Assembly (NCBI RefSeq): GCF_947568905.1
Contig: NC_079170.1
Span: 28,086,001-28,150,000, forward strand
Direction of reading: 5' to 3'
DNA from: Ostrea edulis
Lineage: Eukaryota
Length of the DNA: 64,000 nucleotides
Part shown: in pieces, positions 3,472 to 61,664 of the stretch
How the letters are laid out: the number at the start of each line of letters is the position of its first letter
How positions within the stretch are numbered: position 1 is the first letter of the stretch
The notes under the pieces: model-generated
What the model saw: the letters and a program-made list of their open reading frames with translations, nothing else
What the model was told of the DNA's origin: nothing
The model's database searches: none
Program-made: the position numbers and the translations under genes

Positions 3472-3827
3472 AGTATTATATCTAATCAAATTTTGAATAA
3501 TCGATTGTCTCTTTTGTGTTCCTTAAAATAACACGAACATTTGATGCAAATGACAGTATGAGTGAAAGTAGACGAAGTCGTAGTTGAATATGTGATCGTT
3601 ACAAAACGCCTAATCATTTTAAACACCTGAATACAATGCATTACACTATAGGACTATGGTGTTAAAATTGACAAATTAAGGTGCCTAAGAATTTGCTTGA
3701 ACACAAGGATTTATCAACAACTGCGCGTGTAGTACCGCTAAGCTGGTGTTAAATTCCACTCTGTGACTGGTGTGCAGTATGTTGTATAAACTTATATAAT
3801 ACATGTATGTAATTTGTTTCAGCTGAA

Positions 3828-4157
3828 GGGGGTATACTACTTGTACATCATAATGACTACCATCCTTTAAAAAGTTAATTGAAATATAAATATCTATAAA
3901 TCTCTATTCTGATTAGATTACTTGTCTTTCAGAGTAGCTCAGTGAGTTAGTATATCGACTGCTGATCTGTAAGTCATGGATTCGAGTCCAGCAGGGTTTA
4001 TCAACAAACAAAAATTCAGATTACTTTATACTAAAACTGCACTTTATTTTTACTAAATAAAGTAAATTTGACAGTTTTCAATTTCAGAATACTGTTGTAC
4101 ATGTACATATATTCCACTTTACGTCCGTATCAAATTTCTCTAGTGTAGTATTTCTCC
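3828..4157 (+). mobile_element. Kolobok-like MITE carrying a tRNA-like cassette (copy 1, degenerate ends)
   Basis: Reverse-complement homolog of 38548-38864 and 52073-52387. Internal TAGCTCAGTGAG...GGATTCGAGTCC at 3930-3999. Confidence 0.7.
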
Positions 4158-4542
4158 TTGGCAATTGAGTATGTACATACATGCATACAACTGTACCTAC
4201 ATACGTACGTACGTGTACACACATACGTACGTACGTACCTACACACATACAGACAGACAGACATGTGCTCCATTTGATTAGGAAATAACGCTAGTAATTT
4301 GTATAACTTTTTACAATGCCAAGAAAACTGTCATATCTTTCCCCTCAATTGTATAATACAAGATACAGAAAGTCCTTCAATTTAAATGCAGCTCAATGTC
4401 GGTAGTTACTCTACATGCATCATAACCTAATCATTATGCAAGTTAAGGGTCGACAAATCTTTCAAAAGCTATCGATCGTGCCGTACATTGACCTATAGCT
4501 ATGCTAAATGAAATCCATTGATGCCAGACTAGTACTCATGTG

Positions 4543-4712
4543 ATTGATTGATTGATTGTATATTGCTCGAGAACTTTTCACTCATATGGAGACGTCGCGG
4601 TAAAGGGCTGCAAATTTTAGGCCCATGTTCGGCGTTTACGGTCTTTGAGTAGGAAGGGATCTTTATCGTGCCACACCTGCGGGGACACGGGGCCTCGGTT
4701 TTTGCGGTATCA
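4543..4712 (-). mobile_element. tRNA-derived SINE, 3' half
   Basis: (ATTG)n tail, then CACTCATATGGAGACGTC...GGGATCTTTATCGTGCCACACCTGC, matching 21040-21945 and 25678-25927. Confidence 0.85.
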
Positions 4713-4970
4713 GATATATCGATAATTTACATGGAAATTGTAAGAAATCACCCCTTCATATTTTGATGATCTTTAATCAAAGTGCAAATTGACATACTGC
4801 CTAAAAGCAATACTATCGGATACATGTACAAGTCATATATGTGCTGTCCCTTTTTCTCATTGTCATTATGAAAAATGTCCAGTCCTAAGATACGTTCAAA
4901 ACGCAGCTTCCGCACACGTAAAATCACTCGTAAAGCCTACATTTACTGAATTAACTACATTTAGTAAAAC

Positions 4971-6706
4971 CACAGGAGTCTGAAGTTTTATCAATAAAAT
5001 CAAAATAAAAATCCGGGAAAAAATTATCCAATCCGGAAAAAAATTATACACCGTTTTAAAGTAAAGCGTTCTACTTGAAGGTCAGAGGGATAATTCGTAC
5101 CCTCAAGTAGGACCCATGGTCACCCGAAAGTAGTTCTTCTATCTCGAAGTAAATGTATGTAATAATAAATAAAAGTGAAACTCTTATCTGTTAGAAAATA
5201 GTAAATGTGCCTACTTTCTGCATGACTTTGTCATTGTCGAATCACAAATCTTTCGGCGGATGGACATGTTTCTATGTACATTCTGTTATGAATCCGTTTA
5301 TTAGGTCTATCCACTTTTCTGTGTTTTTCTTATGTACATTACTATTGCTATTATCATTTCATATATTTTTCCTAATTTAATGATTTTTTTGTTTCAATGC
5401 TTGCAGATGAATAAACTTCAACATTATATAGAACCTAACAACATAGGCTTTAGTGGGACCATATCCATATTGGGGAATTGTTCCAACCCGTTGATTAATG
5501 GTTCTACAAAGGTTACCCGTGGTCACCATTATAATGTAGTGATTATACAAGGGTCTCCTCTGGTCATCCATGAATGTCATGTTCATATACGGGTTACCTC
5601 TGATCACCCATTGATGTAATTGACATGTAAGAGTTACCTCTGATCACCCATTGATGTAATTGACATGTAAGAGTTACCTCTGATCACCCATTGATGTAAT
5701 TGTCATATACGGGTTACCTCTGATCACCCATTGATGTAATTGTCATGTAAGAGTTACCTCTGATCACCTATTGATGTAATTGTCATATACGGGTTACCTC
5801 TGATCACCCATTGATGTAATTGTCATGTAAGAGTTACCTCTGATCACCCATTGATGTAATTGTCATATACGGGTTACCTCTGATCACCCATTGATGTAAT
5901 TGTCATGTAAGAGTTACCTCTGATCACCCATTGATGTAATTGTCATATACGGGTTACCTCTGATCACCCATTGATGTAATTGACATGTAAGAGTTACCTC
6001 TGATCACCCATTGATGTAATTGTCATATAAGGGTTGCATCTGGTCATCCAATGATGTAATGGTCATGTAAGGGTTACCTTTGGGGTGACCCTTGTACGAC
6101 CATTATTATATCAATAGGTGACCAGAGGTAACCCTTTTATAACCAATTGCTTCTATGGGTGATCAACGGTTACCGTTATAATATTGTTAAACATATGGTG
6201 ACCAGAAGTAAACCTTTTATGATATTTACATCAATAAGTGATCAGAGGTAACCCTTATATGATAATTACATCAATAGGTGACCAGAGGAAACCCTTATGT
6301 GACCATTATATCAATGGGTAACCAGAGGCAACCCTTATATGACAATTACATCAATAGGTGAGCAGAGGTACATGTAACCCTTGTATGACCATCACATCAA
6401 TGGATGACCAGATGTAACCCTTTTTATATAATCATTACATTAACTGTGACCAAAAGTATCTTATATACATCAATGTCACCCATCGATGTAATACCCATTT
6501 AAAGGAAACATTTGGTCAACCATAGATGCACTAATTATAAAACGGTTGGGTTCTACTTGAGGGTACGAATTATCCTTCTGCACTTGAGAGTACGAATTAT
6601 CCTTCTGTTCTATGAATTAAAAGACGGTATATAATTTTTTTCCGGATTGGATAATTTTTTCCGGATATTTATTTTAATTTGATTGATAAAACTTCAGACT
6701 CCTGTG
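4971..6706. mobile_element. Non-autonomous foldback DNA transposon with 7-bp TSD (P-superfamily/Galileo-like)
   Basis: Long TIRs start CACAGGAGTCTGAAG (4971-5115) and end CTTCAGACTCCTGTG (6548-6706). The element is flanked by identical GTAAAAC (4964-4970 and 6707-6713). No transposase ORF. Confidence 0.85.
5591..6500. repeat. 40-bp tandem array followed by an inverted, more degenerate array of the same unit
   Basis: 12 units of G(A/G)GTTACCTCTGATCACCCATTGATGTAATTGTCAT(GTAA/ATAC) at 40-bp spacing from 5591 to 6070. Orientation flips at ~6083, and reverse-complement units continue to ~6500. Confidence 0.95.
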
Positions 6707-7874
6707 GTAAAACTGCGTCCAGGGCCCAGTTGCACAAAAGATGATGAATTTAATTGGCGGTTAGCATCTAGTTAACACTATATATCGTGTGAGAGTTAAT
6801 GACAGGTAAATTATCAGTTACAAACCCTCAGAAAACTGGGTCCAGAAAATCATGGTGGGGTCAATGATGGTAAACGACACACAAATACATTTATGTCCCA
6901 TGTAAGGTTGTCTCCCTTCTTGTACAGCGACATCACCAACTGTAGGTATAGTGCTTCAAGTTCGACCTCAACATGGAGATCAAGACGGTGCGGGTTCTTT
7001 AACATGCCTACTCAACTCGGGGAAAGTCTTATAACCATGTCCAAGCCCTTCTAGGTGTATTAAGTCTTTATTGTCTATAGATTACTAATAGAATGCACTA
7101 TATCATTTCATTTGAATTCTCCTATTAGGGAGAGGGCTAAAATAGGCTATGCCTGATGTCCGATCTCATCCACTTATTTGTGAACGAAATATTGTTTAAA
7201 TTAAATCATTTAAATATCATGTCATATTGAAATTATTTTACCGATTGCTCTACTTTTGCTACTAATGACTAACTTTTTCTTCAAAATAAAATATCGATAC
7301 TGTGAGTGACAGATTTTTCTGTGGTGGAGAACTCCTGCATTTATACAGTTTCTTGAAACTTGATCCAAGCACTCAGAAACAATCTTCTTATCTCTTGCGT
7401 TCGATCTTTAACACTTTTACCAGAAGTTCATATATATCTTTATCTTATTTGTAAATAGTTTGTATTTATAACCGATGAACTGCATAGCTTAAAAGGAAAT
7501 AAAGAATATGGATCTGTATGAAAATAACAATATATTGTGGAATTCGAACCTAATTGGAGAAAATTACTGCTTTCAAGCATTAGCGTAGGATCTGATAATT
7601 TTGAACATGAAATCTTTGGAAAAGCATATACCTTTTTTAACTTTACGACTTAAAAATAGAATTGACGAAAGTACAAGTAGAAACACAACTGTCCACGTGT
7701 CACCATTTTTGGAAGGAAGAAGTTCCCCGCCCCCGTCCATAAGCGATGTAGTTGTTTGGTTTTTTTTAAATTTTTTTTATTTTAACCGCCAATCTCTCTT
7801 TTGTATAAAAAAAAAAAAAAAAGAAAGAAAGAAAAAAAAATCCTGTGGTACAGATTTACGTCAAAACCAATAAT

Positions 7875-8830: not shown

Positions 8831-9439
8831 ATATGAACAACTATATATTACCTTTCTAATTTAATGCTTTATTTATTTAAAGTGGATTGCAAACGGCCCT
8901 AGAGCTGGGAATATGCTCTTTATCTTTTTGTTGACCGTTGATGAAATAAATATGTTGTCATGTATGCATAACTGAATAAATTAGACCCAATAACATTTAT
9001 CCTTTTTTGTTACGAACACCCTCCCCCCTAAATTCTGTTTTTCACAAACGACACAGAGCATGTTTTTTAATTGTCTTGACAATTGTGTATAAAACATTGT
9101 CGATCCCGATAAACATGTACTTGCGCATGGTCATGATCAAATTGGCTTTCCCTCCATGTGTACGATCAAGTGCTAACCTGTTAGGTTCCAATCTATACTT
9201 AAAGGTCATCAAACTAAAGTTTAGCCTAGTTCCCTGTCCCTGCTATGCTCCGCTCTACTGCTTTTAGTCAAGGTGCCAGGGAACCAACTAGCTAAGTTTC
9301 CCGCATAGCAGCCGGTGAATACCGATCCCGATTTAGATAAATGCGTACATTTATACATGTACAAATTGACTTCATGGGTTTTTTATTTGTACTCTGGAAT
9401 ACTCCTGTTTAAGAGGCATACACAAGTCAAAATTTGTAG

Positions 9440-9680: not shown

Positions 9681-10204
9681 TGCAATACAGTAACTTCAGT
9701 GAACAATTCGGACGTAAAACAGCTAACAAACAAGCAAAACTGTATCGCATATCTCTTATACTGTACATATATTTAATTTAATGCTGTTTTGACTTACATG
9801 TATACATAAATATTTTAAAACAGAAGTATTCCAGAGTACAAATAAAAAAAAACCCATGTTCTCACTATTTGATTTTCTGAGAGTTTGAGAATTTGAAGAC
9901 CATGCCTCTGCCTTGCAATCCTCTGAAATATAAAATGTAGTCGGATCACTCACATTTGCCCGGGTCCAAATTCGGTATGTTAAGTGTACTTATTCTTTAT
10001 TATCTATAAATTGAATGCAGTGTATCGTAGCATGTTGGCACTGTATCACACAGATTTAATAAAAACGACAAATTTGTCATGGAAATTTGATACAATATTA
10101 ATACCATGAATTCTGTATTCATTTAATTTAAACCAGAGTTGCATGATGGAAAGTAATTTGAAATATTTCAAGATTTGACATTTTATCAACCACGATTATG
10201 AAGT

Positions 10205-10313
10205 TTTGTTTACCCAATCGAGATATAGGGCTCACGGTGGGTGTGACCGGTCGACAGGGGCTGTTTACTCCTCCCAGGCACCTGATACCACCTCTGGTAT
10301 GTCCAGGGGTCCG
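10205..10313 (+). mobile_element. Family A retroelement fragment
   Basis: GATATAGGGCTCACGGTGGGTGTGACCGGTCGACAGGGG...CACCTGATACCACCTCTGG. Confidence 0.8.
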
Positions 10314-17399: not shown

Positions 17400-18000
17400 G
17401 ACAGGAGATAATCATCCCGCTATTTCCACAAAGATGAAATCAAGCTTGTTTGTAAAGCTCTTGACTAAACGAGAAACTAAGTTACGTTTCAATTTGCAAT
17501 TTCTCAATGATTGAATTACACGAAATGTGTTTGAATTTGATTACAACAGATGTAGAAACAATTGGTGCACTGATTTGAAAGAAACATTTCATCGTTTAGA
17601 ATTGGACCATGATTTTTGAATCAAAACTAATGGTAGCAATAGATTTGTATCAATAAAAAACGCACTTACTATTCAAACCTTTGGGGCAATGAATTTTTCG
17701 ATATTCCTAAATTGCGTAGTTTGTGTATCTTTTAAAATAACAAAATTAGTAGCATTGGATATGCGTTAATATTTACGTTAAGCCGTGGCGCAATTTAGAT
17801 GTGGAATTTTACCATTACGAATAGAGACTGGTAGGTATCATGGAGAACCTGTTGAAGAACGACTTCTGTACATTTTGCTCCGAAAATAGTGTAAAAGACG
17901 GAATTCATTTTTTTATTGCACGATTCATTGTACTCTGGACATCGATCAAAACTTTTTTTAAAAACACTGGATTTAACCAAATGTTAGACTAGTATGGTCA
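17400..18000 (+). mobile_element. Decayed LINE ORF2 C-terminal region (CCHC-type end; RTE-X-like by inference)
   Basis: Joining frames gives AQFRCGILPLRIETGRYHGEPVEERL-CTFCSENSV.DGIHF at ~17790-17910, the LxIETGR...RxCxxC...DExHF motif of LINE ORF2 C-termini. Multiple stops and frameshifts. Confidence 0.75.
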
Positions 18001-21000
18001 ATAATGGATGTATAGTGTATTCCAATTTCAAATTACCTTCGCCAGGATGCCAAGTATTTGTATTCATCATATATATGTAGACATTGAGTAATTTTCAAAA
18101 AATGTATTTCAATGATGTATGCATACATGTAGATCAAGTTTAAGTTCATTTATTTTCACTCATACCATCCACCGGTGGTACATGAGATGCAATATAAATA
18201 TGCCATAATACTTATATAATCATTTTAATTGGAATGACTTCTTATCCTTTTACTTCATATCTATATTGTAATTTCTTGTGTGTATAATTATGTGGACTTT
18301 ACCTTGTACCTTAAAGGAGAAGGCTTATATATACATTGCCTGCTGTCCAATCCTTATTATGTTATTCATAATAAAATACTGTTTAAATCAATATAAATAT
18401 GTATATTATCATCATATCATAAAAGACACTGCTGAATTTATCACATAAGTATATATGTTTGTATTTCTATGGTGTATATTTTCATGTATTTTCCCTTTAT
18501 TTCTTAATGCTGTGCTCCTTCCTCCCCCTGTCCCCCCTTTATGTACTGAATTTAAGCTTCGTACTTCAAGTGGCATGTATAGGCCTGATGGGCCGGGTGT
18601 TTCATTTATTTTTATACCCTCTGTTAACATAATGTCCAAGACTGTACAAATATCACTGTAAATAAATAAATTACTTACTTGTCTTTTGATTCTGTGTTTT
18701 ACATGCAAGCTCCATTTGATTAAAACAAAGAACATAGTATAACAACGGCCTTTAAAAATGAAGTAATTTGTAATTTAAATCGTAAAAAAAAAGTTACATA
18801 TTTGAAAAGTTATCTAATGTTATTGATTGAAAGCAAATATGAAAAAAAATAGTAGTGTTATGAATAGAAAGACTAAAGATTTAAAACATATTATTCTAGT
18901 GTCCCTAATATACAATGTATATGCATTTGGAAAGTATCAGATACAGCCAAATACATGCCATGGATAATTGGATATATAAATTTCACGAAAAGGCAAACTT
19001 GTGCTCTTTTGTGTGCTAAAAGAACACTACTTTTCAGTTGATGAAATGTATAAAAAATGAAATGAAAAAGAGGGATATAGAAACTACACTGTGACCTTTC
19101 TGTGTAGTCCCTATACATTGATTCTATCACTTAGATAAAGCTCGCTTTGAATCAGACGTCATCATAGACATGAGCTGAGTACGAACTAATTACCACATTT
19201 CTAGGGGTGTCTCTCTTAACAAAGGCCAGTTTACAGTTTATCGAATGGTGTATATGTTTTTCAGATATGCAATACAATGATATAACCTACATGCATGGCG
19301 CTTGTTGTATTTCCTTCATCTTTCGCGCGACCTCATACGAATACACTCAACATTGGACAGATTTCTGCAGTCTGTTCCTTTTCTCTCCTAATTCTAATTC
19401 ACAATCACAGCGACCTTGTTATTGTCGGTTCTAAATAAAATATCTTACGACTAAGATCAAAATCTACAAACATTGTAATTTCTTGTAGATTTTCTTCATT
19501 AATATGTAAATTAAAGTACATCCATAATTCATAAAACTTGCATACATATTTACATTGTACATGTATAAACTTGTGATCGGTATTTGATTACCAGACATAA
19601 TTTTTTCCTCTTATAGTCGTAAGATATTTTGTAAATTGGGCCTCAGAATCTAAATTATGTAACATCTGCACAATTTACTGTCCTATTATTTATTAAGATA
19701 AGGGTATTATTTGAATATAATCAGAAACATAAAAAAATGTCTTCTCTGTTTGTGATGAATTGTTCTGGTTACAACAGGATGAAAAGCCATCCTGTGGTTG
19801 TCATACATATGCCCATAGGTCTTGGTCCATAGAATGATATAGTCTAAGCAGACACGTGTTTTGACAATGCACTCTCGTGTTTCTTTTGTATCCGGTGGCT
19901 GTTGATACCAACTCAAAAACGTTGAATATTTATTTCAATCTCCGTTTTCATCATCACAACCACAATCTGATGTCGTCACACCCATGCCACACCTTCATAC
20001 AGATAACTACATGTACATGTAAATGCATATCTACTTAAAAATGTTAAAAACAATAAATCGTTTTCAAGAACTATTTCTTTAACAAAGTCATCATATTTTT
20101 CGTACACAATCGACAAACAGCCTGACTGCCTCATATTGAAATGTTTACACGTCACCTTTCATATTCCGACCGAGCAAAACTGTTTACAAAAACGGAAATT
20201 ACGTCCATGAAGGGAGAAAATCGCAATTTACTTTCATTTCTAATAACTCCCGTTTCATACTCTTATTAGTTCCAATTTTCTCCCAGAGAGCGAAAGTTGT
20301 GCAGCTAAGTATATAATGAGTGCTAAAATATGACAGTGCGAAAATTACTTTTGAACCTCGAGTGTACAAGCTGAGGGTGTTGATAAATGAGAGGACATTC
20401 TTTGGGTTTATTTCACCATTGAAACCCACTAATCAATACACATACTTAAAGATCGATATTTTCATTTTTAACAGTAATAAGTTTGTAATCCCCCCCCCTT
20501 ACCAAATATTTTCAGAATGAATATTTAAAAAAGGGATTGTTTTTCGATAAACGCTGTTTATTTTCATGGTCCAGAGGCGTGCTCCAATACAAATTTTTGA
20601 TTACTGAGAGATACTGTGATAATGCACATTTGAAAGAAATTCTACTTTAGTACACGCATGCGGAGGTAATTAATATGATTAATATATTAAGAAAATAATT
20701 AGATTTCAATGATTGTTGTGAAAACAACGTCATAAGAGCGGGTGAATGTGACGTCATTGGTACAAGCTTTCCCAGAAGTATGTCTATATTTGGAATACCG
20801 AAATGGTCAGGAGTAACTATGGAGTAGTGTTAAATTTATCGACTGAATATAAAAAATATGCAAATATGGGACCGATTTTGGCCCTTAGAGCCCCTAGCTC
20901 TTTTCATAACGCTCTAACACGCGTTGTTCAATTTGTATGCACACACTGTTGCAACTATGAGACAAAATCTTTCACAAAATAATGAGTTATTTCTTAACTG

Positions 21001-24680: not shown

Positions 24681-24829
24681 NNNNNNNNNNNNNNNNNNNN
24701 NNNNNNNNNNNNNNNNNNNNNNNNNNNNNNNNNNNNNNNNNNNNNNNNNNNNNNNNNNNNNNNNNNNNNNNNNNNNNNNNNNNNNNNNNNNNNNNNNNNN
24801 NNNNNNNNNNNNNNNNNNNNNNNNNNNNN
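24681..24829. other. Assembly gap
   Basis: Run of 149 N. Confidence 1.
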
Positions 24830-24907
24830 ATCGTCGAGAGATATATCACGCTGGTAGCAAGATGCTATAGGAGATTTGGTTCCACAGGTCGTGAGTATCC
24901 GTATATA

Positions 24908-25380
24908 TAGCTTGGTACCCGAGGCCTTCCGATGTTCAAAGAACGAAGGCCAGGCATCTGCTGTCGAGTGGATTCTTCCACTGATCAAAATCCAATATGG
25001 CGGACTCGATGGTAAGTAATGGGAATGTACGTAAATGAAGAAACGAAGTGACACGGTTAGATTTAATTTAACACACGTGAAAAATATGTGAGTTGACGAG
25101 TCACCTACTTACTTGAAAACAAAGGGATAAGACTGTATCAAACAAGCGTGTCACATGAAAAACCAAGTATTATACATTTCCAAAGGTCTGTCTCTGGCAA
25201 ATAATGACATAAAATCGAAAATAACACAGCTAATTAAGCCATGATACGCTCATTTACGTACATTCCCATTACTTACCATTGAGTCCGCCATATTGGATTT
25301 TGATCAGTGGAAGAATCCATTCGACAGCAGATGCCTGGCCTTCGTTCTTTGAACATCGGGAGACATCGGGTACCAGGCTA
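24908..25380. mobile_element. Non-autonomous DNA transposon with TAG...CTA ends and 9-bp TSD (AcademH-like)
   Basis: ~130-bp TIRs TAGC(T/C)TGGTACCCGA ... TCGGGTACCAGGCTA. CCGTATATA is duplicated at 24899-24907 and 25381-25389. Confidence 0.85.
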
Positions 25381-29399: not shown

Positions 29400-30665
29400 T
29401 GTACATAAGCAATCTTGTGCTCCATGTTTTTCAAAGCGAAATGTATGTAGAATTTCAAATAAATATGTCATTTTCTTTTGAAACCTTGAATTTGCTCAAA
29501 TCTGTGACAATATTGTGGATTTAAACAACATGATCATGATTATATGTTTTTAGTAAAAGCATCATCATAAAATACACAAGTTAAAATTGGGGCCACATTG
29601 TGCACTTATTACACCTTGTCATTCATTAATTAGGCAATTATGCCATGCGTCACTTTGACTTGGCTAAAAATAAGAGACAAATTATGTGAAACTGTGTTGA
29701 ACAAAATCTCTTACAATGCCCTATGTGTATTCAAAACATTTTTGATTCTTGCAATTGTGAGTTTTCTAATATTTGGAATGAACGGGGTATGCTCAATGTG
29801 AAATGAATAACAAATGCAGGTAGACAAAGACTGAAAGATGAATTTATACAGAAATGTACCAAATTTTATAATAGCTCATTCAAGGGTCATGCGTATAAAA
29901 TTTTCAAATATTTGTCAAATTCAAAACTTCAAATCATCATCTACCGATAGAGACTGGTACATGTAGGTGGCTGGGTGTACCATTAGAGACTGGTACATGT
30001 AGGTGGCTGGGTGTACCATTATAGACTGGTGCATGTAGGTGGCTGGGTGTACCATTAGAGACTGGTACATGTACATGTAGGTGGCTGGGTGTACCATTAG
30101 AGACTGGTACATGTAGGTGGCTGGGTGTACCATTAGAGACTGGTACATGTAGGTGGCTGGGTGTACCATTAGAGACTGGTACATGTAGGTGGCTGGGTGT
30201 ACCATTAGAGACTGGTACATGTAGGTGGCTGGGTGTACCATTTGATGACAGATGCTGTACTTACTGTGATTGAAAACAATTTGCAGATGGAATGCACTTT
30301 ATTTTAGAATGTAAAGCTTTTTTCAGATGTAAGAAACAAATCTAGACACGAAATTCTGTTACATACTAAATACTTTTAAATTATGTGAATTGATGAAAGG
30401 TGAACATAACGAACGGTGATCAATCTCATAACTCCTTGATGCCATCTTTGAAACTGAAATTTTTTGAAAGCTCTCTGCATGTTCATACTGGATATTTATG
30501 AATCAGTCTCCCCTCCTTGATTATATATATCTCGTGTACTTGCGCTTTTTTTCTAGTATAATTCATGCTATTCCTCTGACAAATTGCTTAATTACGAATT
30601 TATAAATTGCACCTCATGTACCAATATATAGTTGGTTTAAGTGAATAAACTGAATTGAATTGAAA
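29400..30665 (+). mobile_element. Decayed LINE ORF2 3' region with AATAAA+(TGAAT)n tail
   Basis: RQRLKDEFIQK..SSFKGHAYKIFK..FKTSNHHLPIETG..RW.GVP.DDRCCTYC..HFILECK can be read across frameshifts; tail at 30644-30663. Confidence 0.8.
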
Positions 30666-32287
30666 AAGAGTTAGCTACCCCTTGTTTGTGTTTTACGGGG
30701 GCCCATATGGGCTTTTTTATCCTCCCCTGTGTACATGCTAACTATCGCGAGACTTATTATCCGCTAATGAGAACTCCAGCGGGATTCCAAGCACGTGACT
30801 AAGTCCGTGTTATCCTGGAGAGGCTGGGTATTACAATCGCAGCGGGGTATTTTTCTTCGTATTTATCAAACCAATTAAATCGTTCTGTCTTACTTTGAAG
30901 GTTAATGATAAATCTATCAACAAGTTGTAGTCTTTAAAACACACTGCAACGCGTGGACCTATTCAACAACATGTGTTTCTAACAAAAACTTGATGGTTTA
31001 GGTTGTGCACTTATTACACCTTGTCATTCATTAATTAGGCAATTATGCCATGCGTCACTTTGAATTGGCTAAAAATAAGAGACAAATTATGTGAAACTGT
31101 GTTGAACAAAATCTCTTACAATGCCCTATGTGTATTCAAAACATTTTTGATTCTTGCAATTGTGAGTTTTCTAATATTTGGAATGAACGGGGTATGCTCA
31201 ATGTGAAATGAATAACAAATGCAGGTAGACAAAGACTGAAAGATGAATTTATACAGAAATGTACCAAATTTTATAATAGCTCATTCAAGGGTCATGCGTA
31301 TAAAATTTTCAAATATTTGTCAAATTCAAAACTTTAAATCACCATCTACCGATAGAGACTGGTACATGTAGGTGGCTGGGTGTACCATTAGAGACTGGTA
31401 CATGTAGGTGGCTGGGTGTACCATTAGAGACTGGTACATGTAGGTGGCTGGGTGTACCATTAGAGACTGGTACATGTAGGTGGCTGGGTGTACCATTTGA
31501 TGACAGATGCTGTACTTACTGTGATTGAAAACAATTTGCAGATCTATGGAATGCACTTTATTTTAGAATGTAAAGCTTTTTTCAGATGTAAGAAACAAAT
31601 GTCTAGACACGAAATTCTGTTACATACTAAATACTTTTAAATTATGTGAATTGATGAAAGGTGAACATAACGAACGGTGATCAATCTCATAACTCCTTGA
31701 TGCCATCTTTGAAACTGAAATTTTTTGAAAGCTCTCTGCATGTTTATACTGAATATTTATGAATCAGTCTCCCCTCCTTGATTATATATATCTCGTGTAC
31801 TTGTGCTTTTTTTCTAGTATAATTCATGCTATTCCTCTGACAAATTGCTTAATTACGAATTTATAAATTGCACCTCATGTACCAAGTGAATAAACTGAAT
31901 TGAATTGAAAAAGAGTTAGCTACCCCTTGTTTGTGTTTTACGGGGGCCCATATGGGTTGTTGTAACATATTTAATTCCCTGCACATGACAAGGCTTTTTT
32001 ATCCTCCCCTGTGTACATGCTAACTATCGCGAGACTTATTATCCGCTAATGAGAACTCCAGCGGGATTCCAAGCACGTGACTAAGTCCGTGTTATCCTGG
32101 AGAGGCTGCGTATTACAATCGCAGCGGGGTATTTTTCTTCTTATTTATCAAACCAATTAAATCGTTCTGTCTTACTTTGAAGGTTAATGATAAATCTATC
32201 AACAAGTTGTAGTCTTTAAAACACACTGCAACGCGTGGACCTATTCAACAACATGTGTTTCTAAGAAAAACTTGATGGTTTAGGTTA
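29600..32287. repeat. Tandem segmental duplication 1 (about 29600-31003 / 31004-32287)
   Basis: Near-identical copies joined at GGTTTAGGTT|GTGCAC with 2-bp TT microhomology. They differ in minisatellite copy number and small indels. Confidence 0.95.
29945..30241. repeat. 36-bp minisatellite, 8 units (4 units in the duplicate at 31350-31497)
   Basis: Unit ACCATTAGAGACTGGTACATGTAGGTGGCTGGGTGT. Confidence 0.95.
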
Positions 32288-37842: not shown

Positions 37843-38547
37843 CTAACAATCGGTGTGAAACACGTCAGACAGCATTTGACCAATGATAGGTGAGATCGTT
37901 ATAACGACCATATAATTTGCGAAATGCTGACTTCAATCGAGACTGTTGAAACCTCTGTACAATCAACTTGTTTGTCAATAGCTTGCCTTTGTATTTACAT
38001 TTTAACCTGGTCACTTTAGCTTCGTATTGGCAATTCGCTAGGTATATTGAGACCGAAGGGGGGTGTAGTTGCGTTGGTCTTTATACCCCTATCAACTCTG
38101 ACAAACTATTGCAATTTTGCCTTTTATCTGCACTGATGATGGACTTTTCTCCGCTAGCAAGTACACTGGAGATTGAGTACTATAGATCTGTGTCGGTCAA
38201 TGCCATTGGTTAGACCCGCCATTGAGTAACCTCGGGCATCTTCTAATGTAATACCGAAAAACACCAAGGCGTGTAGTATTACTGAAAGAACATTAAAAGT
38301 TCCACCTTTTTTGGTGGGGGTACTCCTAGATATAGTTTAAATAATTGCGCATTGTCATGCACTATGATATGAATTATCGACTACATTTATACATGTACAT
38401 AATGGACCATCGAAAAGAGCCAAAACAATTTTAATACACCTAGACGTATTGTTTGCCTGCGAATAAAAAACAGAACACGGTATAAACGGATTCAAAATTT
38501 TAGAAATGCAAGATTGCGATATTTTGTCGAAATGGCATTTAATTTAA

Positions 38548-38864: not shown

Positions 38865-41190
38865 TTAAGTATACACGACTAATCCCCGATTTGCTGTTAA
38901 CAGGACATCTGTAAATCAGATATCATTGACCTCACTAATCATGCTGTTCCTGATTGCTGCGTACCACCTGGATATACATGTACGAGTATATTTAATCCAG
39001 TAAAACTTTGAAACTTGAGAGTTTAATAAAAGCGCCAAACGACAATGGGAAATGATAAATAGATACAATAGTCATGGAATCCATGAATTTTCAGGATATA
39101 GTTCTGATTACTTTTGTTGATTAAAAAGCGGCTGAATCAAAATTAGTGTGTAAATTAATCAAAATCAGATCCTTTGTAACCCTCCCCTATAATTGCTACA
39201 CTTGTATTGGAGTGTATCGTAAGTACAGCGGAATACACGAGTCCAATTTTAATTAGATTAGGGTTGTGGGTCCATATACCAGGTGTCTGTGGCTAAAACA
39301 TCATATTGACAGAAAAAAATGTCAGTAATTGTTTTATCGTATGATTAGATGATTCAAAGTATCGAAACTGGTTACTAATGTCTACGAAACGATATCAAAG
39401 ACAACTGAAAAGTCGGCTAAATGGGTACACCCAACAGGCTGTCCTTTTAATTGTCTTTAATAATGAGTCTTTACGTAAAGCTTATTTGATATATAATGCT
39501 GAAATAAATCATTGTGTTAAAGATTGCAATATGATATTGTTCTAATTCACTCTGTCAGTGCTACATGGAGATCCAATATAACCTTCAGTATACAACTGTA
39601 TCACCGCCTCGCTATCAAATACAGATTTGGGAAGTTTTTTTTTTATCCCATTGTCAGTATTGTGCGATCATCGTTTCATTACATTTTTACTTGTTATTCT
39701 TTAAATTAACATTCCATTAGAAGAGGTTTTGCCAGGCGCGCCTGTAGAAGGGGGAGGGTGGTGGTGGTACAAGCTCTCCCCCACTGATCTGGGTAGAAAA
39801 TAAATACATTTGCCTTCTAATTGTACATATATGTAATTTGATAAAACGCTTCTGTACAACAAAACCGTGTATGCTAAACTTAACGACAATCGTTTCTGTA
39901 GAACAAAATCTTATATGCTAAAATCCTGATTGTGTTAGCGCAGGGTTTCATAATAGTACAATATGCTGGTTGAACTGTTTGCTGAAGTCTTACTATCCGA
40001 TCACTATATCTGATTTAAAAGTAACAGATTCCATTTTGATCTTCCAATAAGATCGGGAAGTGAAGAGCCATATCGATTCTCCACCTCGATAAAATCATGG
40101 CACTTTAACATCTCCTTCACACAAGCAAGGAATTATTGACGTATTAGTTCAAGTAATTTATTTGAACCGTTGATGAGGTGAAAATGATATATGCGGTATT
40201 TACATAATTTTGTTCAACACATTTCAAGATATGAAAAATATCTTTATTTCCGTGAGCCATACCTGTATATCATATGGCATCTATAAATCTAAAAACGTGA
40301 TAAGTAATAGACGTTTTCTATTAAAAATATCTCCTTTTTTCCAATGTTAATGACTTTCAGTTTTCCCTTAGCATCAAAATACCATCAAAATAATTTTTAT
40401 TTGGAATCTATATTCGATTTTCACATGTGTAAACCCCTGTACAGGTGTCATATTTCCTTGTTTTATTTACTGACTTTGTGTATAAATACCAAATTCCTGC
40501 GAGTAAATTATTTCAAACGTTTTTTATTAATACAATTGTATCAGTATTCATTGTTAAGAATGATGGTCAAGTCGCCCTGAATACAACTCACCCCCTGTCT
40601 ACAACTCACCCCCTGTTTGGGACAACTCACCCACTCCGTCAAGACAATTCGCCCTCTCTATGAAAACACTTTTTCCATTGCTGAATCAATATCTTTTTAG
40701 TATAAGAAATATATAAACCTTGATAGCCTATTCTATTTTCATGCTTTTAGTAACACAAGCGTGTATCTTATTTCATTAGTTCATTTTCCCACCCACTTTA
40801 GACAACTTGCTCGTGCGAGATCCTTGTGGTTTGGCAGATATATAGAGAATATCACAAGCTATTAAAATCCACACCATTTGTTTGTTGTTTTTTTTTTAGT
40901 TTCAGTTTCTTTATTTCCGTGAGCCATGCATGTATGTCATATGGCCCCATATCTATAAATTTAAAAACATGATAAGTAATAGACGTTTCCTATTAAAAAT
41001 ATCTCCTTTTTTTCAAGTGTTAATGACTTTCAGTTTTCCCTTAGCATCCTTCATGACTTACGTGTAAATATTTATTACCAAGAAAACGGGTTTTGTTTTC
41101 TTTTTGTAAAGTTGTGTACGTTGTGTTAATGCCTTCATATAAGACGACATATCAAAAAATCGCAAATGTTTTCATTCTTTCTTTTCTCCT

Positions 41191-41503
41191 AACAGTACTA
41201 CATGCACAGGTATAAACAGTACTACATGTACAGGTATAAACAGTACTACATACACAGGTATAAATAGTACTACATACACAGGTATAAACAGTACTACATA
41301 CACAGGTATAAACAGTACTACATGTACAGGTATAAACAGTACTACATGTACAGGTATAAACAGTACTACATGTACAGGTATAAACAGTACTACATACACA
41401 GGTATAAACAGTACTACATGCACAGGTATAAACAGTACTACATGCACAGGTATAAACAGTACTACATGTACAGGTATAAACAGTACTACATACACAGGTA
41501 TAA
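41191..41503. repeat. 24-bp minisatellite, ~13 units
   Basis: Unit AACAGTACTACAT(G/A)(T/C)ACAGGTATA. Confidence 0.95.
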
Positions 41504-41560
41504 AGAAATGGTAAGGCTATAGAGTATGTAAAAGGGAAACAGTAAATTATGATGACTGTA

Positions 41561-44647: not shown

Positions 44648-45319
44648 AACCCATTCATAACGCCCCATTTAGTGGTTATTTATTCTATTTTACTCAATTT
44701 TATGGAATATATATGTAACAAATTCTGTTGAATACAGCACATATAGCTTTAAAATGCTTTTAAAAAAGCACATTCTGTGCAATTTTAAGGACCATAATCA
44801 CCCCACCTCCATATGGGATGGAGATACATTATTTTCAAAAATTGAAAAATCACTACTCCCACTGCACCTTTGGAAAATATGAGATATACATGTATATATA
44901 CTAATATCTGCATTCAGAGTGTTATTTAAATTTAGTATGAATTAGGAATTAGTTGTGAAATTTTATGAATATAGATTAGGTATTAGTGATGAAAATTTTT
45001 GAGTATGAATTAGAAATTGGTGTTAAAAATATTGAGTACATTGTATATATTAGCAAGTGATAGAAATTTGTGAGCATAAATTAGGAACTGGTGAAAAACT
45101 TGGTGGACTGAGATTACTCCATCAAGAATTCAGAGACATTGTCGTGATATCCCTGTATAATGTTGATGTCTACAGTGACCTTGCTCTCCAGCCTCACACA
45201 TCTACAGGAGATCCGAGAGTTTACAGGAGATCCGAGAGTTTGGGAACGAAACAGTTATCCAGCCTCACACATCTACAGGAGATCCGAGAGGTTGGGGGAG
45301 CAAACAGTTATCTAGTGTT

Positions 45320-45556
45320 TCATAACGATTGTTAAGCCGTTCTTGGCACACTGATTTTGACTGCGGATAACTCCATTTACATGATCAAGATATAGGGTTC
45401 ACGGCGGGTGTGACCGGTCAACAGGGGATGCTTACTCCTCCCAGGCACCTGATCCCACCTCTGGTGTGTCCAGGGGTCCGTGTTTGCCCAACTCTCTATT
45501 TAGTATTGCTTATAGGAGTTATCAGATTGATCACTGTTCGTTATCTTCACCTTGCA
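45320..45556 (+). mobile_element. Family A retroelement, long copy, inserted at the start of the satellite
   Basis: CTTGGCACACTGATTTTGACTGCGGATAAC...TTATCTTCACCTTGCAT separates satellite units at 45188-45312 from the main array. Confidence 0.9.
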
Positions 45557-45564
45557 TCTATTAG

Positions 45565-48445: not shown

Positions 48446-50559
48446 ACACTACCAGTACATGTATCTACGTGAAAGTGCCAGGTGATAACACTAGGCAGAC
48501 GATAATATTCGAACTGATAACCATCCGCGTTTGAAAGTACCGCTCTGCTTATGGAACTCTATCGTGGTTTAAAAGGAAACAAAATAGTTTCTCCAAATTC
48601 TCCATGTATGGGACCAAAATGACAAAAGTCAGCAAAAGGTTAGATCTCCAATTTAAAATACCAATTTTCATTTCATCACTTTTGCAAACATAAAATCTGG
48701 AAAATTTAGAAATAAATATTTAGTTTAAGGAATTAGTTTGTTTTAAACAAACACGCTGCTGTCCCCGCTTAATCACTACAGCGGATTAAAGCGAGTTATT
48801 TGCCGCCGTTCGAGTGTCATCCAGTTTTTCCACGTATTCTCGGAGATCATTTAATTTGACAACCTCGTGTTCATTACTTTTCTCGTCCTCGTGCCCAGCA
48901 CAACATCTCTTCTGTCTGTATCATTAACGGGGAAGAAACTAAAGGTCTTTTCTCTCTCCTTCAGAGAACATGAAACACGCTGACAGATTTCAGCGTTCAT
49001 ATTTTTTCTTCAGGATCCATTATGAATTATTCCAACAAAGTATCGATTTCCATCACTGCAGAATCTTGAAATGATTAGAAAGAATTAATTTGATGACACG
49101 ATCGTAAAATCTGAAGATTGCAAAAGCCAGCGAAATCCTACTATACTAAAATAGAAAGACTTTAATGAATAACAGGAAATTATCACAGGTTTTACGGTGT
49201 AACATCGAGGGCATTGACAAAGTAATAAATTTAAGTCTAATTCTCAACATCACAACCTGTAGGTAATTACTAGATGGAATATGTATCACATTTCTTTCTT
49301 ATTTCGTTCTTAAAGCGAAACTGACCGCATAATGGCACTCCGTACACTCAGAGAAGTTCTACAACCCGACATTTTGTGCATTTTACCATATTTCTTGAAA
49401 AGAAAATTGCACATCACAAATAGCTCGAATTTCATGGGTGATCTGCATTATATAGTCAGTGATGGCGCCAGTGTCTGTATTATGAAAGACTTGTGAAGTC
49501 TCGTCAAAATAAACAAGTTATCAGATGTAAGTTCGGATCGGATCACTTACTTTCAGAATTAGAAAGAAAGTACAACCTGCTGTTAATTTTTTTTTTAGAA
49601 CATGGAAATTGACAACGTTAGAACGGCTTTAGAACCATATCCAGCCTTAGTAGTCACCGTTTTCCTTATCTTTAGAAGTAAGTTTTTAGAAGTAATTCTT
49701 ACGCTAAACAGTGTTTACTACATTTGATAAGCACGATATTACCCCCCCCCCCCCAAAAAAAAAATACAAACCAAAAAAAACAAAAAACAATACTCTGTCG
49801 AGTGGGAATTAATAATTACTTATTTAACATCTTCCAATATACAATCACACTTATACGTGTTTATTTATGGAATATTGTATCTCATAGATACCCTGGTTTT
49901 GTCCTCATGTGATTAACCAAGGAAGTTGTTTTTAAAGAAGTAATCATATCCTTTAAAGGAGCATATTTCACACTAAACCCACGAGATATGTCTGTTTTCG
50001 ACATATGGAGAAAAAAAAGCAAAATACAAATTCTCAAAAAAGTCTTTTGGTAAAAAAGGTACATAACTTCTTTTTTATAATCTAAAGAGAAAAATATAGG
50101 TTATGATGCACTTATCTTAGTTAGAGTCAGAAGAAATGGGTCTTTCAAAAACATTGAGACATTGAACTTGTGAAAGTTATAAACCCTTAGCGCTGGGCCA
50201 AGTCAAACAATGTGATAAAGCAGTACTTATTTCTATAATTAATTTATCCATGATTTATTAGTACCTTTTATTGGTCTGAATTCTGTAAAACGTTTCTATT
50301 TTATAGATAGGATACCTAAAGAAAATTCACACTTTTCAACAGTGTGTCATTTTCATTAATGAGGCAGTAGCGCGGGATTGTAATACAATGAATTAAATAA
50401 TTTCTCTATTCCCTTCAGAGTAAATGTCTCTGACGTTACAGGAACCCGATCATATCTTGAAATAAACTTCAACTAATCACTCTTGAAATTTAGATTTTTA
50501 CACTTTATTATTCAATAGCAGTTTTAACCAGATTGAAATCCAACCTGCCTTGCCAACCA

Positions 50560-51039: not shown

Positions 51040-51760
51040 TAAATTAAAGTAATTCAATTCAATTTCAATTCTTTATTGTCCTTGACTTATACAATTCATG
51101 GGAATGCATCTAGTACATGTACATGTATTTACACAATATATCAAATTGTATAAGATAAACAACAGGTGAGTGGACATGAGAAGATAGGAGGAGAAAAAAA
51201 TTACAAATATAAGATGATATACATATACATGTAATCACATTATGAGATGCACAATTTATTAGAAAAATTACATTATTGACTTACAATGCTAAACTTCGTA
51301 TTTTCACAGCTTGAACTAAGAATTTTCCCAAGTTATTGAGTTCTTTGGTATTGTCTACACTAAGGAGCTTAACTAATTTAAAGACAATTGGTTTTTTGTA
51401 ATAGAAACCCTTAATATATTTCTTTCTCAAATCGATGTAAAATGGACATTTCAGGATAAAATGAAACCCATCTTCTCTATCATTATAATCACATAATTTA
51501 TAAAGCCTCGCAGTCCTTAAAACTTTGTAATAGATGTGCAACAATTTCTTTTATCAGATATTTGTTGTAGTTTAGACAGACATTGGAGTGATTGATTAGA
51601 ATGTTTGTTGGGTGTATGAAGGGCATTTGCGTGTACAGGTATTGTTTTAAATAAATAAAATGAAATACTAGTAGAAATGACACGAATAGTTACGGGTCAT
51701 AAGATATTGTACGCAGTGTACAGGTAATTGTCCTAAAAACGAGTTCCTCAAAATAGTAAT
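51040..51760 (-). mobile_element. LINE 3' end (ORF2 C-terminus, 3' UTR, tail)
   Basis: RLYKLCDYNDREDGFHFILKCPFYIDLRKKYIKGFYYKKP.VFKLVKLLS..N.KELNNLGKFL*; minus-strand AATAAA+(GAATT)n tail at ~51050-51075. Confidence 0.85.
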
Positions 51761-52387: not shown

Positions 52388-53854
52388 TTAAATATGTAAC
52401 TTTTTAGACAAAATGAAAGAATGTGTGTAGCATATGTATTTTTAAAAAAATGATATAAAAGTTCCCTTTGACAGGATTTGAACCGAAATACCCCATTAAC
52501 GCAATGGCAAAGCCATTCCTAGTAAATAGCTAGATGTTTATGATAGAGTTCATATGTCGATGGCACAGGTAAAATGAGCTCGGTGATAATTACAGGAGCG
52601 AAAAGTAATTTCCGAAATATTAGACAAAAATTGTTATCGGTCCACTCCTGCGATTCTATTATGAAAAAAACTGTTCTTAATCGTAAAATGAAGAATGCAG
52701 GCTTTGAATTTTGTACATTTGAATAAGAACCTTTGACCAAGCAATGACCGAACGAAGACCGTAAGACGTGCGTATCATTGGTCAATTTAGTGCTTTGTAT
52801 ATTTCCTGTACAGTGTATTTGACCTAGTATCCTCGTTGTGGATCCAACACATATAGGTATCGGGTGTTGTTGGAACATTAGTGCTTTATATATACACTAT
52901 ACATGTATATATTTTTTTCATTAGATTTAGATCAGATGAATAATGACTGTACTTGTTAAAAATGGAGTACCTGCAAAGCATGATGCAAAGAGGTATCAAT
53001 GGAATCCACATCAACTGTACACACTCACACACCCTTCATTATATAACTGGTTCATAACCCCCCCCCCCCCCCCCCCCCCCAGCATAACAAGTTGATTACA
53101 TGGCCAGATACACTGTTGAAAGTGTCGTGGGTTATAAGGCGATTTACTAGGAAAAATGAACCTGCACGCTGTACATGCGATGTGAATGTTATACACAGCG
53201 TGATGCTTTGAACAGAAAGCTGAACTGTTTAATTACTAATTACAATATATTGTATCTCATTAGCGCATTTTGAAAAAAAAACCTCTCCAATTATGTTGAA
53301 CTGCATGGCCAATTTCTGACGTACTTCAAACTAGTTTTTTTTATCAATGTGCACTGCGAAGGACCAAATTTTCAACGCACCTTGAAAAATTAAAGTACTG
53401 AAAATACTGGTAGGCGTAAGTTTATGTGAAATGATCTGCATGGCTATTGAGAAGGTGCAGAAATATGTCATAGTACTTGCATTTGACAGTATCGTATACT
53501 CATATCAGTGTACTTCTTCATCTGCGTTTCCAACACTACTGTCAATGTAACACTGTCACTGGTATGCTTCCATAGTTAACAAACAGTTGAAACAATGGGA
53601 TTACGCTATTTATGACCTGGGAATTCCCTTAATCATTCATTAACCTCACTTTCTAATTTATACACTTACTTGTTTACCTGTACTCGGTGTGTTAGTTTTC
53701 GTGGATATGTAACAAACACAATGAGATTACATAACCACAAACATTACCTACATGTAATTGTATATGTACAATATGATGCAATCTATTTTAGTACAAAATG
53801 GCGACGTGTTTACGTTCGCGCTTTGACCTACAATTTGTACCCCATGTTTGCGCC

Positions 53855-54162
53855 CCATGCGGAAGGTTAGGGTTCGAATCCCGGCCGCGACAGACCTAAG
53901 TCGTTAAAACAGGTAGTTACAGTTCCATCGTCAAACACTCGGCATCAAATGTGAATGTCACTTGTCCTTGGAGATGACCTTAAAACGGATGTCCCGTGTT
54001 ACAGTACATTTGTAGGTGTGGCACGCTAAAGAACCCTCACTTTTCAATGGCCGTAAGTGACGAGCATGGGCCTAAATTTGAAGCTCTTCACCGGTCTTAA
54101 TGGCATCTCTAAATGAGTGAAAAATTCTCGAGAGAGACTTGAAACAAGATACAATCAATTAA
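53855..54162 (+). mobile_element. tRNA-derived SINE, nearly full length
   Basis: GGGTTCGAATCCCGGCCGCGACAGACC head, family body, GAGTGAAAAATTCTCGAG 3' core and CAAT tail. Confidence 0.9.
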
Positions 54163-54226
54163 TTCATGTGTCACACGATTTTGTTGTCGTCTGCTTTATA
54201 AACAAATCTGAGCCGGCGGAAGCAAA

Positions 54227-58100: not shown

Positions 58101-59164
58101 GACAACACTATAACCAATTGTAATCAAAGAAAACAGTCCGTGTCTCAGCATTGGGTAACGTAAAAAGTCCAAGAGATTGTCAAATGCAAGACGAATATAC
58201 ATGTAAAATACCAGGGTATAACGTCTCCGTGTGCAAGTGTAAAGGCTACAACAGGGTGTGTGCATACATCATGAAAATTCATACGAATTAACCCTTTCTC
58301 ATGGCTTTCATTACCAAACTAAATAGATGAAAAAGCTGATGCTTAAATGAAATTCAAAAATATATTTTGTCTTTGAAATAGGCCTCAGAACCCCGACAAG
58401 ACGGTTCTAATTCCCCCGATGTTATAAAATGATAATGGTAAACTATTTCGTCTGTGATCCGACACGTAGTCTTTACCACAGCTGACAATGGAAAGAGTCC
58501 CCCAGTGCTATGCAATGACTACATCTGTTATTCCTATAAATATGTGTGAAATACCGTTCTCATCCCTCTAAGTTCGTGACATATCACATTGAATGTGATG
58601 AGGATACGCATGCTTCAATTCACATGTACATCCAGAACATGTATATTAATCTGTTTTGGTTAGTTAATAGTACATATCAACACCTTCTGACAGAACTATC
58701 GATATAAGTACACATAAAGAAACTAGGACAAGGTCCTATTTCTGACAGGGACAGTAGTGAAAATTGAACACGGCAATTGTTGAAATTGAAATTTACGTAC
58801 ATGTAGAGAGGCTTCGAAATTTTTCTGGATCCGCCACTGGTACATGTAATAGATGAATGTTTCATATTTGCACCATATGTAGGCCTAATGAATGGTTTTG
58901 TGGTCACGGGTTCAAAAGCCGTGATGTCCGTTACTAAAATACATACATGAATGGGCACTGAACTGGTGTAATGAAAAACTCGTCTGGAATTACCTTTGAG
59001 ATCACAGGTCAAGGGGTGGTTTCGGTTTGGCAAAAGCTTGAGTAAGGTTTGGGCTTAAATGTGTGATTTCCTCTGGGTCACGTGGCAAAAGGGCATGTGC
59101 ACTGCTACTGAAAGATATATCATACGGATGTATATTTAATTGCTGTTATAGCTCGTATTCTTAG

Positions 59165-59979: not shown

Positions 59980-60494
59980 AAAAAACGTATGTCGTCATCC
60001 CTTGAAAACTTTGAACTCATGTTGGACTCCCATATGACTTTTGGGTTATTGTGTGAATAAACTTGAAAGTGCACTAGATGAGGGTGCTTGCATATCAATT
60101 TAATTCATTGTAACTTAAACCCCCAACCTAATTCCCGCCGGATCATAGTTTACACACATAGATGAATTACCATCACATTCAGAAGTGTCCCTGCAAGTAC
60201 TGGCTATTCTAGAACTTTCAGTATAGTTCTCGGGAACAAAATCAAATTAGTATTTAACAACACAACCCCCTATTTTCATTTCATCTTCATCTTGTCTCAT
60301 TGACAAGGGTTTGGGCCTTCATTTGCAACACTGAATCCCCTATACTTGAATACGTATGATTTGGGCAAAGTTGCCCAGTGGTTCTTGAAACTAAGTCTAA
60401 AATGTGAATTATAGTCTTCTTATAGACAACAAACAGACGCCAAAGAAACGATATACAGAAGGCACGTATAACTTTCAGTCCAGGTGAGCTAAAA
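59980..60494 (+). mobile_element. Degenerate Helentron-type element
   Basis: Internal GGCCCTTCATTTG-like and CCCAGTGGTTCT motifs; 3' end CAGGTGAGCTAAAA. Confidence 0.55.
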
Positions 60495-60573
60495 CGCATA
60501 CGAACCTAGCTGCAAATAACGTAAGTGTTTGGTGATATGTGACATTGGAAATAATCGTATATAAGGATTATCT

Positions 60574-60778
60574 GTCTTGTTGACGTATACATGTCTTGTT
60601 GACGTATACATGTCTTGTTGACGTATACATGTCTTGTTGACGTATACATGTCTTGTTAACGTATATATGTCTTGTTGACGTATACATGTCTTGTTGACGT
60701 ATACATGTCTTGTTAACGTATATATGTCTTGTTGACGTATACATGTCTTGTTGACGTATACATGTCTTGTTGACGTAA
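60574..60778. repeat. 19-bp minisatellite, ~11 units
   Basis: Unit GTCTTGTTGACGTATACAT. Confidence 0.95.
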
Positions 60779-61149
60779 CAAGCACACAGATCCAGGCTAC
60801 CCATTTTGAAACTTGATTGAGGGCGCTACGTGCGCATAGGATGGATTTAAGAATACGGTGACATTCAAAATGGACGTTTTCAAAACATACACAAAGCCAC
60901 TTAAATAGAAGTACGTGCAGGCAAGAACTAAACCTTATTTTCTCATGTTCTTCATACGTCATGCTAAAATCACATCAATGTGGTGCTAACGAGATATCCG
61001 GAGTTGGCTGTGACGTAATCAGACACGATGATGGCGGACTCGGGTAGAACTACAATTTGGTTATAGACGTTAGAAGTAACCTGGCATGCAGACCAACAGC
61101 GTCATAACACACTATTCACATTTCCAATGTTTTTGCCTTTGACATCTTT

Positions 61150-61386
61150 AAATTATAATGGTAAGCATTTTCTCATGAATGCCCAGCAGTTGTGAGCAAT
61201 GCAATGCGCGTATGAATATTGATGACGATACTTCTATTTTAACAGCTGGGGTATCAGGCAGAAAGGAAAGTAGAATGTAAATATAGGAAATAAACAGTTT
61301 TGAAAATACACGAGGGAATGAACTGCATCACTTCGTGTCGGTATGAAGTATGCCGACGCGAAGTCTTTCAGTTTACACCCTCATGT
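61150..61386. mobile_element. Hairpin-terminated repeat, homologous to 55790-56050
   Basis: Terminal stem CACGAGGGAATGAACTG..CTTCG.GTCGG ... CCGACGCGAAG..CAGTTTACACCCTCATG. Confidence 0.6.
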
Positions 61387-61664
61387 AAATATACACGTAC
61401 AAACGTAATTACATGTATATGCATAGCTTGAGAAGGAATTTACCGATGATTGTCGGGTACCAATATCCGTAAAATTAGTATTTTGTAACACTCGCCGTAG
61501 ATTTCAAACAGTCCATACTGCTAGCGTTACATTCTGTACATTTGGCAAGGCGGGATCTGCTGTGTAAAGTGTTTTGATTAAACGCATTCTCTTTCTTGTT
61601 TGCGAATGATAAAAACGAAATCTTTGCACTGACTGAAAATTTTTGATGGGTGACTAAAGGTTTG

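Follow-up and report, generated by a model that had tools for sequence, protein, structure and literature searches.

The stretch analysed here, hereafter the window, comprises 64 kb of the genome of the oyster Ostrea edulis (C7:28086001-28150000 of an 895-Mb assembly in 52 contigs; GC 35.8%) and carries numerous copies of the palindromic 8-mer TACATGTA, the origin of which is our subject. The word occurs 40 times in the window as compared with 2.38 on average and never more than 6 in dinucleotide-preserving shuffles and with 2.1-4.5 expected under Markov models of orders 0-3. Seventeen of the 40 sites lie within three minisatellites (29948-30242, 31353-31497 and 41191-41504) and 23 lie elsewhere. 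An earlier note on this DNA had listed 22 sites outside tandem arrays, all of which stand, and had overlooked a further one at 58198..58205; its assumption of ~33% GC was too low. An assembly gap (24681-24829) has its closest motif sites at 20014 and 29958, each more than 4.6 kb away. N-containing words were dropped, no claim made here relies on continuity through this gap, and the minus-strand open reading frame that crosses it (24536-25054) should be disregarded.

Outside the arrays, single sites were found by word count at 3800..3807 (with flanks unlike those of other sites), 4821..4828, 9795..9802, 18124..18131, 19558..19565, 38975..38982, 44887..44894, 51226..51233, 52900..52907, 53749..53756 and 61410..61417. 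Two sites have TACATTTA just before them (9354..9361 and 38390..38397), another two follow each other closely (58798..58805, 43 bp before 58841..58848), and two loci carry the double motif TACATGTACATGTA (20008..20021 and 51114..51127). The site at 48456..48463 is at the edge of a long satellite (45555-48428) in which 52-, 71- and 123-bp sub-repeats make up a 175-bp higher-order unit and 19-bp sub-repeats occupy both edges.

The motif had also been reported within 24- and 36-bp minisatellite units, and it is indeed present in all three arrays, each of which is given here on the plus strand. The 36-bp minisatellite at 29948..30242 has eight units, each with TACATGTA, and one unit is double, having gained a second CATGTA (30066-30079). 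This array lies in the degraded tail of a long interspersed nuclear element (LINE) that reads ...LPIETG-TC-RW, with a CTYC-type motif after the array. A second copy of the minisatellite with four units (31353..31497) lies inside a 97.6%-identical local duplication. Local duplications in this region (29598-30101 vs 31003-31500, and 33626 vs 35001) are ~97.6-97.8% identical and carry 36-bp and 35-bp minisatellites. In the 24-bp minisatellite (41191..41504), five units contain the exact word and other units read TACATGCA or TACATACA, by substitution. The first 36-bp array had been presented as an insertion relative to a related LINE, and the motif is in fact an in-frame addition of 6 bp relative to GAGACTGGTAGG (codons ETGR; 17824..17835, plus strand) in a degraded LINE ORF2 tail reading AQFRCGILPLRIETGRY (at 17.8 kb, ...LPLRIETGRY...CTFC), the part of that claim that does not hold up equally well being the relatedness, for which a short motif is the basis. 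The two LINE regions share no nucleotide homology, no genomic copies with these flanks were found beyond the two in the window, and neither copy has an open reading frame of >=60 aa on the LINE strand. It is therefore only weakly suggested by these sequences that the in-frame addition might be older than the array expansion and the local duplication.

With a genome-wide total of 309,050 sites, equivalent to 22 per 64 kb, the window is typical of the genome, and the enrichment claimed by the earlier note is borne out at both scales. Twenty arbitrarily placed 10-kb pieces hold 60 sites, with at least one site in 17 of them. Word and paralog tests were made on a 264-kb sample, of which 227 kb remained after tandem masking; this masked sequence contains 79 sites compared with 8.0, 6.7, 10.0 and 12.5 expected under Markov orders 0-3, respectively, and TACATGTA ranks first among all 256 TA-N4-TA words, the next being TATATATA. 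The exact word marks 0.42% of TA sites. Per TA, it is equally frequent inside and outside low-copy repeats, 68 of the 79 sites have no paralog in the sample, the flanks are diverse across sites, and clustering is mild (variance/mean 1.6; gaps <1 kb, p=0.02).

The whole 8-mer is the unit of enrichment. A TA on one side of CATG tends to go with a TA on the other (odds ratio 5.1, p=7e-19), while 14 other palindromic cores are uncoupled except for GGCC, which lies inside a repeat family; likewise, the remaining 15 TA-XY-Y'X'-TA palindromes are unenriched, except for TAGGCCTA within that same family. The 24 one-letter neighbours of TACATGTA total 265 vs 223 expected, individual neighbours such as TACATGTT (10 vs 12.5 expected) and TACATGAA (13 vs 13.5 expected) show no excess, and the excess that exists consists mostly of transitions (101 vs 72.6 expected). 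Markov models of orders 5 and 6 predict 38.6 and 61.6 sites in the masked sample, where 79 are observed; these expectations are circular because most of the 6- and 7-mers are contributed by the motif itself, and we therefore used the neighbour and coupling tests in place of high-order models. Two further palindromes deserve mention. TAGGCCTA (16 vs 1.5 expected; window positions 25766, 33626, 35001, 58880 and 61747, and L007-L020) was considered as a second type of insertion with GG...CC ends and rejected, as about half of its copies belong to a single repeat family, ...GCAAAATT-TAGGCCTA-TGCTCGGCGC..., that continues past the TA; its remaining sites have varied surroundings. For the CRE-like palindrome TGACGTCA, the 264-kb sample holds 17 copies vs 3.5 expected, also in diverse contexts (e.g. 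window positions 20749, 23433 and 26424).

Comparisons between related copies demonstrate that TACATGTA is a derived insertion at a single TA. In a foldback element at 4964-6713, a 40-bp unit is repeated in two arrays of opposite orientation (5549-6079 and 6105-6422), and in one unit (motif at 6369..6376) the sequence reads GGTACATGTAACC where seven aligned sister units read GGTAACC; as the earlier note had recognized, there is no template for this insertion. Similarly, four paralog partners of the site at L006:3473 have a single TA. For an unbiased test of polarity, we used the interspersed repeat that is most abundant in the sample (~25 copies per 264 kb, with a conserved GACCGGTC core). This family is present in the window at 10245, 37813, 45412, 51906 and 56133 and at many other loci, and one of its 21-mers occurs 4,450 times genome-wide. 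At the family site TATAAGCAA-TA-CAAAATAGAG, 4,450 copies retain TA alongside 41 insertion alleles; TACATGTA is present in nine copies that represent two events, one on C6 and the other in a segmental cluster on C8. The eight copies on C8 (C8:5386678-6010573) lie at a spacing of ~55-165 kb, indicating a large tandem segmental duplication. A second family site, GGTGAAGA-TA-ACGAACAGTG, has 106 insertion alleles, 100 of which were listed; four listed alleles add 6 bp, of which two are TACATGTA, one is a tandem duplication and one is of another kind. Among the listed alleles of both sites, there are ten independent 6-bp events (four TACATGTA, three tandem duplications and three others), so that TACATGTA makes up 4/7 of the non-duplicative events, for which the chance with a pre-specified hexamer is ~1e-12. 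An all-against-all indel spectrum of the random pieces gave eight 6-bp events outside tandem arrays, one of which is TACATGTA, a number too small to be used alone. One of the insertion alleles at the tested TA site, TTACCGGTATA (C6:55159701-55159730), contains TACCGGTA, a word that occurs 4 times vs 1.2 expected in the sample, with a TA..TA coupling across CCGG of odds ratio 3.4 (p=0.06), and that may represent less common scars left by elements with CC...GG ends.

Together with the clean paralog cases, the 4,450 TA copies against nine TACATGTA copies show that TA is ancestral and TACATGTA derived, which answers the objection, raised in the earlier note itself, that the motif could be ancestral and the TA copies deletions. 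The broader form of that objection, namely that the motif was inherited with repeat consensus sequences or spread by arrays, can draw on the 17 of 40 window sites that lie in minisatellites and on the sites at L018:9573 and L009:3386, whose relatives differ from the motif by one letter at the corresponding position. Yet a 6-10 fold enrichment persists after tandem masking, and the equal per-TA rate in and out of repeats, the diverse flanks and the many sites lacking a paralog all oppose it; only in the 36-bp and 24-bp arrays does the motif recur at the same position with conserved flanks in most copies. We regard this explanation as largely refuted and very improbable. That TACATGTA is instead a protein-binding palindrome maintained by selection would suit its perfect symmetry and the enrichment of TGACGTCA, another palindrome in diverse contexts, but it is extremely improbable for a word with ~309,000 copies spread near-evenly over 0.42% of TA sites, which arises by insertion even in decaying repeats and around which decayed neighbours pile up, as seen in the excess of transitions.

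The form of the insertion becomes clearer when variants with additional letters between its halves are included. Sample counts of TACA-(n)-TGTA for n=0-5 are 79, 28, 34, 24, 14 and 14 against a baseline of 13.5, with Poisson p values of 4e-4, 2e-6 and 6e-3 for n=1, 2 and 3, and genome-wide counts follow the same course (309,050 for n=0, 104,247 for n=1 and 90,810 for n=2, compared with 64,114 at n=10). In the sample, the reverse order TGTA..TACA shows no excess at any spacing, and the control pairs AACA..TGTT, CACA..TGTG and TAGA..TCTA have a flat spacing profile. Three such variants can be polarized. At L007:6135, TACA-CC-TGTA is a derived insertion of 8 bp at TA; at L009:1558, TACA-G-TGTA is a derived insertion of 7 bp at TA inside the most abundant family; and in the window TACA-TT-TGTA (TACATTTGTA; 54005..54014), one of the examples in the earlier note, is confirmed as an 8-bp insertion relative to four relatives from its own repeat family. 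The filler letters match the background base composition. An attempt to read the third base of element ends from the TACA-NN-TGTA fillers was abandoned, as they showed no CAG/CTG or CAT/ATG signal and composition only. Thus, the junctions have fixed ends, TACA and TGTA, and 0-3 untemplated letters between them, which fits the signature expected of double-strand-break end joining, and an excess of N(1-3) in one order only is the heterogeneity typical of that process. This order-specific TACA-N(0-3)-TGTA spectrum is a new observation, and we consider a TA-directed, derived and junction-like insertion to be established.

Another candidate source of 6-bp insertions is replication slippage, or a hexanucleotide microsatellite process based on (CATGTA)n, for which TGTACA or TACAT words already in place would be the substrate. 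A case in the window is the motif at 4098..4105 in a repeat resembling a miniature inverted-repeat transposable element (MITE): the 6-bp difference described in the earlier note exists and is seen relative to three relatives, but the added letters amount to a tandem copy of TGTACA with 7 nt of homology, and slippage fits it equally well. Double motifs, found at 5 of 74 loci, are ~5x as frequent as random re-hitting would give and may come from slippage or a second hit, 4-nt homology is seen at 20% of sites vs a 10% baseline (2-fold), and ATGTACAT is ~3.6-fold enriched. The excesses of double motifs and of 4-nt homology make some contribution of slippage or microhomology likely. However, with CATGTA as the added unit, homology is limited to the 2-nt TA at 44% of sites and does not exceed 3 nt at 62%, and the latter are therefore not slippage products; homology of >=8 nt is confined to double motifs, which make up 13% of motif instances, and at most sites the inserted unit is not a copy of adjacent sequence. 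Slippage also requires a template that the change from GGTAACC to GGTACATGTAACC lacks, it does not predict the filler variants, which are in excess and derived, and it leaves aside that the enrichment requires TA on both sides. We therefore strongly doubt that it made most of the sites.

We suggest that excision of Tc1/Tc3-type cut-and-paste elements (IS630-Tc1-mariner) left most TACATGTA sites behind as fossil scars, an explanation that the evidence, although circumstantial, makes probable. In this model, an element would insert at TA and duplicate it, giving TA-CA...TG-TA. During excision, the transposase would cleave precisely at the tip of each 3' end and 2 nt within each 5' end, so that the left donor flank would retain TA with a CA overhang and the right one TA with a TG overhang, both 2 nt long. 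Host end joining would then ligate both overhangs, sometimes with 1-3 filler letters, to generate TA-CA-(N0-3)-TG-TA, and a scar once formed could spread by other means, for instance inside minisatellite units. The two letters kept per end, CA and TG, match a 2-nt stagger. We infer the excision origin, the 2-nt stagger and the old age of most events. What the earlier note had proposed is thus upheld in that the insertion of CATG plus TA is TA-directed, derived and genome-wide and has a form that fits a CA...TG element; its description of the element as very active is doubtful.

Suitable enzymes are plentiful. At least 2,380 candidates for PF13358 (DDE_3) are found genome-wide, all 150 of the 150 scored pass the cut-off, and many have uninterrupted ~348-aa frames and identical scores, which suggests young multi-copy DDE_3 families; in the 264 kb, a motif scan found no Tc1 transposase remnants. 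In bivalves, TcMar is the largest curated DDE group (PMC10294476), with 332 of 762 families. One non-autonomous family, TA-CAGTCCCTG...CAGGGACTG-TA with CAGT...ACTG ends, has two copies in the sample and ~1,150 ends genome-wide. Its two sample copies (L003:2440-2905 and L015:5181-6850) are on different chromosomes and differ in their outer flanks, and both read TACATA-element-TACATGTA. CATGTA adjoins 16 of 1,153 ends (13 independent) compared with ~5 expected, so that, despite both sample copies abutting TACATGTA, there is a modest enrichment and not a rule. The same copies can alternatively be parsed as a subfamily with ends grown to CATACAGT.../...ACTGTACATG and still flanked by TA; 16 ends read CAGGGACTGTACATGTA genome-wide.

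Several observations weigh against excision by such elements, in addition to the excess of double motifs and of 4-nt homology described above. No scar was linked to a particular element. In the sample, TACAGT and TACATG are unenriched outside TACATGTA, suggesting that resident TA-CA ends are too few to surface in word counts, and no TA-CA...TG-TA insertions were found at large-insertion junctions between paralogs. The partial scars TACATA and TATGTA are at 1.11x expectation. Two CA-3' overhangs are non-complementary, and a single dominant repair outcome is not self-evident from them. Finally, scars are 10-35x rarer per TA in well-preserved copies of the most abundant family than in the genome on average (2 in 4,450, and ~2 in 17,000 at the second site), which needs an explanation in terms of age or chromatin. 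The dominance of one repair outcome would be explained by a 3-nt CAT/ATG overhang pairing via AT or by a 4-nt CATG cohesive end, both of which are possible and give the same word. One possibility is that the uniform scar stems from an uncharacterised family whose CAT...ATG or CATG ends pair with themselves, and not from classical 2-nt CA overhangs.

The same observations could be accommodated by another TA-directed process, such as aborted integration, with CA-3' strand transfer followed by loss of the element, or a nuclease/repair pathway. The derived insertion at TA, the specificity of the word, the filler spectrum and the symmetric target context (compared with generic TA sites, purines are preferred at -1 and pyrimidines at +1, p=9e-6, and there are weak preferences for T at -2 and A at -3) fit it equally, and it would require neither a donor tied to the scars nor enriched TA-CA end words. 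Against it, Tc1 transposases are abundant and scars are ~3x over-represented beside the ends of the TA-CAGT family; moreover, CA...TG are the canonical termini of Tc1 and pogo elements, and we know of no TA-directed process of this kind other than excision. We therefore consider it unlikely.

Returning to excision scars of Tc1/Tc3-type elements, their main activity looks mostly old. The excess of decayed neighbours (~42) relative to that of intact words (~66) gives a noisy estimate of ~7% decay per site, and the 10-35x deficit in well-preserved copies suggests that most events predate those copies or that such repeats are poor targets. Both speak against an element that is very active at present.

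Cut-and-paste transposons are usually counted by the copies that remain, their excisions being nearly traceless and their history mostly lost. With somewhat less confidence than in the origin of the scars, we suggest that this genome may well keep several hundred thousand datable excision scars, ~250,000 of them exact and tens of thousands with filler, plus a decayed fraction. If so, ~0.4% of oyster TA dinucleotides record a past transposon visit, and the excision rate through time, the choice of targets and the outcome of germ-line repair become measurable genome-wide, this repair having kept both overhangs with 0-3 filler letters. Excision scars would also be a major source of small insertions, of in-frame two-codon additions and of minisatellite seeds. 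In practical terms, TACATGTA is a mutational signature that should not be called regulatory in motif-discovery or k-mer analyses of bivalves. In the literature searched, we found no paper that links TACATGTA to footprints or describes such a genome-wide record.

The proposed scars can be compared with the products of three known systems. Tc3 excision in C. elegans was reportedly studied by van Luenen et al. in 1994. Tc1/mariner elements insert only at TA, which they duplicate, and are cleaved precisely at their 3' ends and, at their 5' ends, 2-3 nt inside the element, 2 nt in the case of ISY100 (PMC2170065); the scars left after end joining equal the transposase overhangs (PMC7827188). As proposed here, the oyster sites would resemble Tc1/Tc3 and ISY100 in the duplicated TA, the 2-nt 5' stagger, the retention of terminal letters and the short repaired scar, and they differ in that those scars were described at individual loci or on plasmids, whereas here the word is the top TA-N4-TA word of an animal genome. 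The Sleeping Beauty/mariner footprint TAC(A/T)GTA (PMC7827188) is likewise an end-joining scar composed of the duplicated TA and 3' overhangs, but there the cut is 3 nt inside and the overhangs pair; in the oyster, the corresponding words TACAGTA and TACTGTA are at 0.79x expectation, and TACAGCTGTA is similarly unenriched. The footprints of hAT elements (Ac/Ds) and of other hairpin-type excisions in plants are, like the proposed oyster scars, short insertions at former donor sites that generate small-scale sequence diversity. They consist, however, of palindromic copies of the flanks around an 8-bp duplication, whereas the inner CATG of the oyster insertions does not copy the flank, and there it is TA that is duplicated.

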